In this document: positions 32,286 through 40,246 of the stretch, one piece after another
Position numbering within the stretch: position 1 is the stretch's first letter
How the letters are laid out: every line of letters starts with the position of its first letter
NCBI RefSeq assembly: GCF_003918875.1
Contig: NW_025767101.1
Coordinates: 434,001 to 498,000 of the forward strand
DNA length: 64,000 nt
DNA from: Haliotis rubra
Lineage: Eukaryota
Direction of reading: 5' to 3'
The notes under the pieces: generated by a model
What the model was told of the DNA's origin: nothing
What the model saw: only the letters and a program-made list of their open reading frames with translations
Database searches by the model: none
Made by a program: the position numbers and the translations under genes

Positions 32286-32852
32286 TGTTTCAGTGTTTAA
32301 AATGATGACTATCTCAGTTTTCATGTTCACCACAAGTATGTCAAGGTATAAACTTCATGGAGCAAGTAGGTCTAAGCAGGTAAACCATGACTTTTAGCTG
32401 GAGCAGTTACACTTTAACAATACCAAATAACAAACTACTGATTTAACCATAACATATTCACAGGAGACTGAACATTGAACTGAGCACATTGATGGTGTTG
32501 ATGAGAAACCCTTCACAGGTACTGTTTGTTGTGACTGTTAATCAACAACGAGCTCGCACTTCAACCAGTGCTGCAAAAGCTGCGGCTAGAAAAAAATCTT
32601 CTGGTTTAGTGAGATAACATTATATATTAGTTGATTTACTCAGACTACAAAAATAGAAAATTAATTTCAGGGTTGTGGAAGTATTTTCACTTTAGAAGCT
32701 CGTGAAAAGTTTCATTTAACATATTTAAACAAATAAATGTAAAAAGTAATGTACTGAGTTTAGGTTCTTCACTGTTTTTAAAAATGATTATGAAATTTAA
32801 AGCATCTTGTTTTTGATATTTTTATGGATTAAACTTCTTTTTTAATTTCTCT

Positions 32853-32892
32853 CACAGCGTTTCGAGACCATTCCAGGTCCCTTCATCAGGTG
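32853..32892 (-). ncRNA. Minimal type I hammerhead ribozyme motif (U16.1 mutated to C)
   Basis: CAC CUGAUGA A GGGACC UGGAAU GGUCUC GAAA CG CU GUG. Confidence 0.65.
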
Positions 32893-32901
32893 AACACTAT
32901 G

Positions 32902-32940
32902 CACCTGATGAAGGGACCTGAATGGTCTCAAAACGTTGTG
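32902..32940 (+). ncRNA. Minimal type I hammerhead ribozyme motif (G12 mutated to A)
   Basis: CAC CUGAUGA A GGGACC UGAAU GGUCUC AAAA CG UU GUG. Confidence 0.62.
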
Positions 32941-33169
32941 AGAGAAATTAAAAAAGAAGTTTAATCCATAAAAATATCTTGGACATCAATGTACAACTTC
33001 TAAATGCCACTGAAAGACATCATCTTGTTTTTGTTCTGCAGCTATCATGATCTTACATTTTCAGAGTTATCAGATAAACATTAAAGGTCACATGTAACGT
33101 AACACATAACTTTGCAGATTCTGATATCTTTCGGTATGGACTTACAGTAACAAATTATCAAAAATGCAA

Positions 33170-33410: not shown

Positions 33411-33575
33411 CTGACTGACTGAGTTTGGTTTTACGCCGCTTTTAGCAATATTCCAGCATTATCACGGTGGGGGACATCAGAAATGGGCTTCACACGTTGT
33501 ACCCATGTGGGGCTTCGAACCCAGGTCTTCGGCGTGATGAGCCAATGCTTTAACCACTAGGCTACCCCACCGCGC
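33411..33575 (-). mobile_element. SINE family B, full length
   Basis: 12-bp TSD aaattaatagta. Confidence 0.9.
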
Positions 33576-38769: not shown

Positions 38770-38949
38770 GAGCGGTGGGGTAGCCTAGTGGTTAAAGCGT
38801 TCGCTCGTCACGCCGAAGACACTGGTTCCGTTCCCCACATGGGTACAATGTGTGAAGCCCATTTCTGGAGTCACCCGCCGTGATGTTGCTGGAATATTGC
38901 TAAAAGCGGCGTAAACCATACTCACTCACTCACTCACGCACAGTACTCA
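38770..38949 (+). mobile_element. SINE family B, full length
   Basis: 14-bp TSD ctgtactgaaacaa. Confidence 0.92.
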
Positions 38950-39611
38950 CTGTACTGAAACAACTAGCATAGTTGTACATATCGAACCTAACTGTGGTAT
39001 CAGTGTCAGCAGTAGCAGAAGACTAACATTATACATGTACTTCCTTCTGACCATTCTGATAGCAATATATGGAAACTATGGTCACTCCTGCAGACAAAAT
39101 AAAATGTATGGGCGTGCCCGTTTGTCTCGCGACATGTGATATCGAATACATACATGGATACATTACTGTTTGTATACAATGTATCAGTGATATGGGTCGT
39201 TTACTGAAAGATTATGGAACAAACTGCTCGTAAACAACCGCTGACGGCGAAAGGCGCAATTACAAAAGCTGCTAGGGAAAACCCACTGTTATCAGTGCCG
39301 TTGTTTGGAGAGTTCTGATTGGCTGATCAGCTAGGGACATGTAAAAACACCCACATCAATTGTGAAAGATTCAGTAGAGAAAGATTTAGAAATACATACA
39401 CTTACAACTAAATTTCGGGAGTGTTTGAAGAATTATAGAGATGCTGTACTGAATGAAAACCAGTATAATTTGACATAGCGATCTTGATAACCTGAGTTGG
39501 CAAGATAATGACAATAACCTCATTATATAAATAATATATAACTAACATATCGATACTATGACGATATCATTTCATACTGTTAATACATAGAAATATATGA
39601 CCACAGTGTAA

Positions 39612-40188
39612 TACACAATGCCATTTTAGAAAGTGGTCAAATGTAACATTTGTTATATTTGGGATTACACTTTCTTAGTAAAGTACAGATTCTAGTACTT
39701 TTTGGGTTGAGTCCCATCCGGGATTCGAACCTGAACCCTCAGAGTCTGGCACCTAAACGCAAGCACACAAAGTCAGACGCCTAGACCGCTCAGCCACCGC
39801 GGCTTCCACAAAAATTGAAGTCGGACAACTGGTAGTCTAGACTGCCCAAAAGTACTAGAGTGAGTGAGTGAGTTTAGTTTTACGCCGCACTCAGCAATAT
39901 TCCAGCTATATGGTGGCGGTCTGTAAATAATCGAATCTGGACCAGACAATCCAGTGATCAACAGCATGAGCATCGATCTGCGCAACTGGGAACCGATGAC
40001 CCTGTCAACCAAGTCAGCGAGCCTGACCACCCGATCCCGTTAGTCGCCTATTACGACAAGCATAGTCGCCTTTTATGACAAGAATGGGTTGCTGAAGACC
40101 TATTCTACCCCGGATCTTCACGGGTCAAAAAAGTACTAGAATCTGTACTTTACTAAAAAAGTGTAATCCCAAATATAACATATGTTAC
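39612..40188 (-). mobile_element. tRNA-headed inverted-repeat element, interrupted by a family A SINE
   Basis: About 63-bp inverted arms 39643-39706 and 39845-39859 plus 40141-40188; tRNA-like core 39710-39803 with A box TGGCTGAGCGG and B box GGTTCGAATCC; 31-nt unpaired tail 39612-39642; TSD (ac)cacagtgtaa. Confidence 0.7.
39860..40126 (-). mobile_element. SINE family A, full length, nested in the tRNA-headed IR element
   Basis: 12-bp TSD aaaagtactaga (39848-39859, 40129-40140); internal duplication of the agtcgcct...gacaag module. Confidence 0.92.
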
Positions 40189-40246
40189 CACAGTGTAAGG
40201 TGTAAATGAATATTTTGGACCCACGTGGATTCGTAGGTATAAATGA

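Follow-up and report, generated by a model that had tools for sequence, protein, structure and literature searches.

Insertions of Penelope-like elements (PLEs) are 5'-truncated and form partial tandems, often with an inverted, 5'-truncated copy beside the 5' end, and they carry a tail of 30-40 bp at either end of the unit, never at both (Craig et al., PMC8557442). Purified PLE protein cuts and extends both strands of its target (Frangieh et al., PMC11167929), and reverse transcription by the purified protein of an Anolis element starts at two adjacent internal sites of the RNA (PMC11167929). The parasites of this machinery proposed in the literature that we found are hammerhead retrozymes, non-autonomous Chlamys derivatives, and Schistosoma elements that combine Pol III transcription with a hammerhead. 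In Chlamydomonas, MRC1 and other non-autonomous derivatives of Chlamys PLEs have pseudo-LTRs and occur as head-to-tail multicopy insertions (PMC8557442). The SINE-like elements of Schistosoma (Sm-alpha type) are apparently transcribed by Pol III from an internal promoter, and in tandem insertions the upstream unit transcribes the next one (review PMC6765202). Metazoan non-LTR retrozymes are short non-coding units of ~170-400 nt, often arranged in tandem and flanked by target-site duplications (TSDs) longer than 4 bp; they are considered to depend on PLEs and possibly to form a new kind of SINE.

SINEs are defined by their dependence on LINEs. Two SINE families of Haliotis, MESC and LP, end in simple tandem repeats and were assigned to LINE partners, according to the available passages of the paper that describes them; its text makes no mention of 'Penelope' or 'inverted', and the 12 available passages that contain 'tandem' or 'Haliotis' do not concern tandem or inverted insertion structures. 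The element described here was recognised at positions 39600-40198 of a window of 64,000 nt (the whole stretch of DNA that was analysed) from the genome of Haliotis rubra. It probably borrows a Penelope-type enzyme, and no description of a hammerhead-less, tRNA-derived element that inserts in the Penelope style was found in the literature.

Anatomy of the window copy and of the 298-bp unit

The insertion occupies 39612-40186 on the minus strand, between 12-bp target duplications, and a later SINE is nested within it. The TSD (accacagtgtaa) is exact over its 12 bp; it lies at 39600-39611 on the element's 3' side, in its own minus orientation, and is repeated at 40187-40198 on the 5' side, where the first two bases overlap the end of the element as microhomology (about 1e-4 exact 12-mers are expected in the scanned flanks). 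Followed from its 3' end, the element opens with a one-sided tail of 31 nt (39612-39642, minus strand; unit ~262-295), which ends at start site 1 and has no counterpart in the other arm. As far as start site 2, the 3' module of the direct copy (39643-39705, minus strand) forms the left arm of an inverted repeat; it contains the palindrome aacaaatgtt and is homologous to the 3' module of a second element at 32815-33020. Next comes a degenerate tRNA-derived domain (39710-39803, minus strand; unit 99-192), with a B box (ggttcgaatcc, 39721-39731, minus strand, 11/11 match) and an A box (tggctgagcgg, 39786-39796, minus strand, 10/11 match). Beyond it lies a leader remnant (39804-39845, minus strand), which corresponds to unit 57-98 of a 98-nt leader and includes TTTTT at 39810-39814, the only place on the sense strand with at least four consecutive T, 6 nt ahead of the tRNA-like domain. 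The copy is 5'-truncated at ~39845, part of the leader being lost, and from there an inverted, 5'-truncated partial copy runs on the plus strand. Its inner part is 39845-39859 (unit ~197-212), and its outer part, 40129-40186 (unit ~200-259), is the right arm, which ends at start site 2 and has no tail. A repeat search placed the inverted arms at 39643-39703 and 40128-40188 (61 nt, 97% complementary).

The two parts of the inverted copy are separated by an unrelated SINE (39860-40128, minus strand), whose 3' end, at 39860-39872, is of the (tcac)n type. This SINE is flanked by a 12-bp TSD of its own (aaaagtactaga), at 39848-39859 and 40129-40140, of which the latter is the duplicate arising from the nested insertion. 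The SINE landed in an inverted arm that was already there, so it is younger than its host element. Copies resembling the nested SINE were also seen at several other loci (L027, L081). Arms, core, 31-nt tail, TSD and nested SINE had all been read from the window in the earlier note, and every part was recovered, positions included.

Read in their own orientation, complete copies of the element are 298 bp long and non-coding, and the window copy is shorter at the 5' side. The unit consists of a leader (unit 1-98, sense) with TTTTT at 88-92; a tRNA-like domain (unit 99-192, sense) with an A box at 106-116 and a B box at 171-181, spaced 65 nt from start to start; and a 3' module (unit ~207-298, sense) with a 10-nt palindrome at 248-257 and two alternative cDNA start sites ~38 nt apart. 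At its 3' end the sequence is fixed (...gtgtatttcatag) and neither A-rich nor a simple repeat. The earlier note called the element tRNA-headed; in the full unit the head does not stand at the 5' end, since the 98-nt leader precedes it and belongs to what is copied. The window locus is read as a dead copy, truncated at its 5' side, of a non-autonomous 298-bp retroposon with many copies.

The A and B boxes proposed for the tRNA-like core at 39803-39710 are present, but the core is not a recognisable tRNA. ARAGORN called no tRNAs in the window or in 30 family copies, and the best Rfam match to the unit is tRNA-Sec, whose 18.5 bits (E 0.31) fall short of the gathering score of 47. On manual reading, no more than 4 of the 7 positions of the acceptor stem are paired. 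The domain is a degenerate, type-II tRNA-derived sequence, weak as a fold, and not a tRNA gene. A subfamily copy with 74% identity keeps four blocks (the T-run plus the beginning of the head, each of the two boxes A and B, and the 3' module) and differs in the remaining leader and in the anticodon region. Elsewhere in the window, 33507-33565 (minus strand) and 38774-38840 (plus strand) match tRNA models at 22-24 bits, below the gathering score, and are probably the heads of other SINEs.

No hammerhead was matched in the unit by Rfam up to E 10, and its sense strand is without a CUGAnGA...GAAA core; the Rfam hammerhead models also miss the fold-back element at 32815-33020 and the UTR of PLE family A, so that absence from Rfam is weak evidence where minimal variants are concerned. 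An antisense CUGAUAA...GAAAGC was considered as a hammerhead and rejected for its wrong spacing and its lack of an Rfam match.

Insertion scars of the family

At least 3,295 first-look candidates are present in the 1.38-Gb genome of Haliotis rubra, a figure that is not a copy number, and the scored copies are 94-97% identical; the family is put at no fewer than about 3,000 copies. The first-look counts for the thirds of the unit are thus unusable as a truncation gradient. Anatomy was read in the 30 best-scoring loci, which are not a random sample, with junction coordinates taken from BLAST HSPs and imprecise near short palindromes such as agtact. Clear TSDs were found in 15 of these 30 loci, exactly at the composite boundaries, with lengths of 8, 8, 8, 9, 10, 11, 11, 11, 12, 12, 12, 12, 13, 13 and 14 bp; by chance, ~0.02 repeats of an 8-mer or longer are expected per locus in the scanned flanks. 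The main copies start at varied points of the 5' part (unit 7, 15, 19, 21, 23, 28, 35, 36, 39, 45, 45, 57 and 59). An upstream 5'-truncated tandem copy, joined exactly from unit 298 to unit 1, is found in L003, L004, L006, L009, L013-L015, L018-L020, L023-L025 and L028-L030. In addition, about 19 of the 30 loci carry an inverted, 5'-truncated partial copy at the 5' side, with inner ends at unit 86-255 and outer ends at unit 257-265, and across the family the inverted arms range from 19 nt to more than one unit or are absent.

Taken alone, the window copy, with 61-nt arms (97%) around a core between direct repeats, resembles a MITE or fold-back DNA transposon that had captured a tRNA fragment and was moved by a transposase acting through the arms. 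The family tells against this: its arms vary from 19 nt to beyond a full unit or are lacking; the tail is one-sided, so the ends are not mutual inverted repeats; the TSDs span 8-14 bp instead of being constant; and the copies are 5'-truncated and also stand in tandem. The earlier note had set variable-length inverted arms, a one-sided tail and variable TSDs against the fixed symmetric TIRs and constant TSD of a MITE, and the copies display the former (TSDs of 8-14 bp) and, in the 30 loci, not the latter. The MITE reading is refuted by the variable arms, asymmetric ends and variable TSDs of these loci, and we give it practically no credence.

Insertions end in either of two places: site 1, at unit 292-298, or site 2, at unit 257-265, just past the palindrome. 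In 11 TSD-verified loci, site 2 forms the end on the left (inverted) side, and site 1 that on the right (direct) side. L003 is reversed, with the tail on the inverted (left) side and the direct side stopping at site 2. The tandem arrays in L003, L009, L012 and L019 terminate at site 2. Microhomology of 1-5 nt with the target is present at both junctions. These scars, comprising variable TSDs, 5' truncation, tandem and inverted copies, two termini and a one-sided tail, are the published signature of PLEs. Both strands of a staggered cut of 8-14 bp primed cDNA on the RNA of the element, one strand at site 1 and the other at site 2, each with 1-5 nt of microhomology, and the two 5'-truncated cDNAs were joined head to head, so that the inverted arms differ in length between insertions and just one end has a tail. 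Elsewhere, head-to-tail joining has left a partial tandem copy upstream, or arrays of several units. Like canonical PLEs with a C-terminal GIY-YIG domain, the family has partial tandems (pseudo-LTRs), an inverted copy, a 30-40 bp tail, two start sites and variable TSDs; unlike them, it is 298 bp long, has no ORF and no hammerhead, contains a tRNA-derived domain, and has a 3' end that is not significantly similar to those of four resident PLE families.

The same loci bear on whether the element could be a classical LINE-dependent tRNA SINE whose inverted and tandem forms arose through twin priming and template switching by a LINE reverse transcriptase. Such a SINE would have the tRNA-derived head with A and B boxes, the variable TSDs, the 5' truncation and the microhomology at the 3' junction, and no PLE with a matching 3' end was found among families A-D. 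However, the 3' end is neither A-rich nor a simple repeat, two fixed termini lie 38 nt apart, the inverted and direct copies repeat the same 3' region, the tandem junctions are exact, and the 3' module is common to a fold-back family with a minimal hammerhead. Twin priming yields contiguous, non-overlapping segments of one template. LINE twin priming is therefore unlikely, because the same 3' region is repeated, an A-rich or simple-repeat end is lacking and the termini are fixed; overall, we judge dependence on a LINE improbable. As far as the available passages on MESC and LP allow comparison, the present family is like them in being short and abundant, in having TSDs of variable length, and in its tRNA-derived head with A and B boxes, whereas a fixed 3' end with two termini and a leader ahead of the head set it apart.

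Further observations concern the internal junctions. The insertion at L009:1407-1992 is circularly permuted, running from unit 262 (just after site 2) through a full unit to unit 253, a layout that would be the expected product of a multimeric or circular template; a clear TSD was looked for at this insertion and none was found. The 5' ends of partial copies bunch on the 3' side of the tRNA-like domain, with ~14 of 35 at unit 185-212 where ~3.6 would be expected if they were spread evenly, and a smaller cluster lies at unit 118-130. This clustering could reflect a block of the reverse transcriptase at a folded or modified tRNA-like RNA, or RNA processing at that place. The junctions of partial copies also tend toward the short palindromes agtact and tctaga.

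A 3' module shared with a fold-back family, and the search for a partner

The comparator at 32815-33020 (plus strand) is a fold-back non-autonomous element with arms of 59 nt and 19 nt and a tail of 42 nt on one side; its 13-bp TSDs lie at 32803-32815 and 33021-33033. The earlier note, which placed it at 32816-33020, had assigned it the same layout as the locus at 39600-40198, and its unequal arms, one-sided tail and duplication bear this out. The family to which it belongs numbers at least 1,256 candidates; its TSDs measure 10-15 bp, and its tail is on one side. Local alignment of the 3' module of the unit with the element at 32815-33020 scores 37, against 18.4 +/- 3.3 for dinucleotide shuffles, a score reached by 3 of 3,000 shuffles, and the alignment is collinear across both termini. 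When the window copy is compared with the 3' region of the same element, 7 of 2,000 shuffles reach the score. The resemblance of the 3' regions, at first reported as tentative, therefore exceeds chance, and, judged by these alignments, the two modules are homologous.

In the majority sequence of 20 fold-back copies, both arms contain CUGAUGA, an extra A, a 6-bp helix II, GAAAC and GU(U/C), and the motif closes with a 5-nt strand complementary to the bases before the core. By its sequence, this majority form is a PLE-type minimal hammerhead, in which helix III is only the 2-bp palindrome ACGU. Minimal hammerheads of such a kind have been reported for PLEs and are thought to work as dimers. In most of the 20 copies the minimal core is still canonical, and the cleavage position is U or C. 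In the window element at 32815-33020, both hammerhead motifs have been hit: the sense arm carries G12 to A, and the opposite arm U16.1 to C; these are changes in the conserved core or in an adjacent base pair. In most fold-back copies, the tail-less arm is 8-9 nt longer (through cttggacat) than in the window copy.

It is a fair description of the 298-bp unit and the fold-back family to call them two sister parasites with one shared 3' module, the former carrying a tRNA head where the hammerhead sits in the latter. The unit is also like the metazoan retrozymes in being short, non-coding and often tandem, with TSDs longer than 4 bp; retrozymes, however, are defined by a type I hammerhead and circular RNA, and the unit is without a hammerhead by Rfam. 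Like MRC1 and the other Chlamys derivatives, it is non-autonomous and has pseudo-LTRs and head-to-tail multicopy insertions, whereas those derivatives share their 3' end with autonomous families and are without a head derived from a small RNA, in contrast to the tRNA-like head of the present element.

Canonical PLEs are abundant and young in the genome, with 140 GIY-YIG matches (Pfam) and a C-terminal EN domain, and were grouped into families A to D by their GIY...YIG motifs. Family A has two termini of its own, 54 nt apart, and families B and C also have alternative ends. Copies of family A end at L052:1935 or ~1989, and in L033 the 54-nt stretch in question is inverted at the 5' junction. 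The 3' UTRs of families A and C (L052:1783-1989 and L093:440-600) contain a hammerhead-like motif to which Rfam is blind, consisting of cugaaga...gaaac, a palindrome acaugu, and then ggag, which pairs with an upstream cucc.

Comparison of the unit with 50 PLE 3' regions of families A-D (blastn, Smith-Waterman with shuffles, and nhmmer) yielded nothing significant. The best signals are a 17/19 block shared with family A (z ~4) and a 9-mer, cactttcta, that recurs exactly within the family C tail, with p ~0.04-0.14 in shuffle tests, which is marginal after multiple testing. In this setting nhmmer is low-powered and misses the positive control of the unit against the fold-back element. The partner search was confined to PLEs detectable by the Pfam GIY-YIG domain, as opposed to Naiad-type PLEs with an N-terminal EN or to LINEs. 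When an ORF of family A was compared by tblastn with the window and with 50 loci of the SINE and the fold-back element, no adjoining PLE coding sequence was found. A 1,060-aa 'open frame' at a GIY-YIG match (L081:1509-4691) was discarded as a purine-rich low-complexity stretch and not a gene; a fragment of family A lies next to this stretch, at L081:4365-4922. The earlier proposal of a PLE parasite with a tRNA head in place of the hammerhead is thus supported in part, by the insertion scars and the shared 3' module, but a significant similarity of the 3' end to families A-D did not emerge.

Transcription, template and distribution

Taken together, we consider it likely that the family is a non-autonomous 298-bp retroposon that is copied by the reverse transcriptase-endonuclease of a PLE, with the tRNA-like domain as its putative Pol III promoter. 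The domain would act as an internal promoter for Pol III. The transcript of a solo copy would run into the flank. From a tandem copy, transcription by Pol III would begin at one unit's head (unit ~93-99) and stop at the TTTTT of the next, and the product would be a unit-length RNA in which both start sites are internal, with a trailer of ~90 nt behind them. The leader and the TTTTT ahead of the head suggest that tandem copies are the transcribed masters. By analogy, a unit-length RNA with internal sites would fit the requirement of the Anolis PLE for internal initiation. The tRNA-like head would then fill the place held by the minimal hammerhead in the sister fold-back family. This predicted tandem logic, in which an upstream unit is needed for the next, would be like that of the Sm-alpha elements of Schistosoma. 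Sm-alpha elements rely on an active hammerhead to cut multimeric transcripts, whereas in the present family the T-run ahead of each head would set the length of the unit.

One feature speaks against transcription by Pol III, in that the leader, which lies ahead of the supposed Pol III start, is found in new copies, T-run and all. With the leader copied, the template must read through the T-run or be made by another polymerase, or else the copies must arise by template jumping between RNAs. This bears on a different account of the element, equally dependent on a PLE, in which the tRNA-like domain is a processing or structural signal (for RNase P, RNase Z or a block of the reverse transcriptase) or a passive relic, and the RNA is made by Pol II or by reading through tandem arrays, a mode proposed for retrozymes. 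Such an account is in keeping with the 98 nt upstream of the head that are copied into new insertions, with the clustering of partial-copy 5' ends just 3' of the tRNA-like domain, with the permuted L009 insertion that runs from unit 262 round to 253, and with the poor cloverleaf. However, the A box, the B box and the adjacent upstream T-run are among the blocks conserved between subfamilies, and the sole sense T-run stands exactly where the Pol III transcript of the previous unit would have to stop. The junction evidence, moreover, comes from a small sample, with HSP-based positions that are imprecise near the palindrome agtact. We therefore regard a domain without promoter function as rather unlikely, though less so than dependence on a LINE, and retain the PLE-dependent retroposon with a candidate Pol III promoter as the preferred reading.

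A more far-reaching version of the preferred reading holds that the family represents a true class of Pol III SINEs that depend on the reverse transcriptase of PLEs and not on that of LINEs, with tandem dimers as masters, a permuted unit-length RNA as template, and a tRNA module that functionally replaces the hammerhead. We offer this version tentatively and would sooner doubt than assert it. If true, a family with thousands of young copies and clean scars of the PLE type would mean that the PLE machinery is open to hijack by a transcript derived from a small RNA, and the element would provide a natural 300-nt substrate, with two mapped start sites, for the study of the poorly understood insertion of PLEs. 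Annotation is affected as well, since an automated pipeline would break up insertions of this kind and label the pieces as MITE-like hairpins, satellites and SINEs.

The element was also found at 90-99% identity in contigs, of uncertain kind, from four organisms (L003:1343-1999 compared with runs X1, X5, X6 and X9), and the family is therefore common to several related species. In those four organisms, loose contig ends accumulate at both termini of the element, and one contig of 228 nt (organism B) spans the tandem junction with only two differences.
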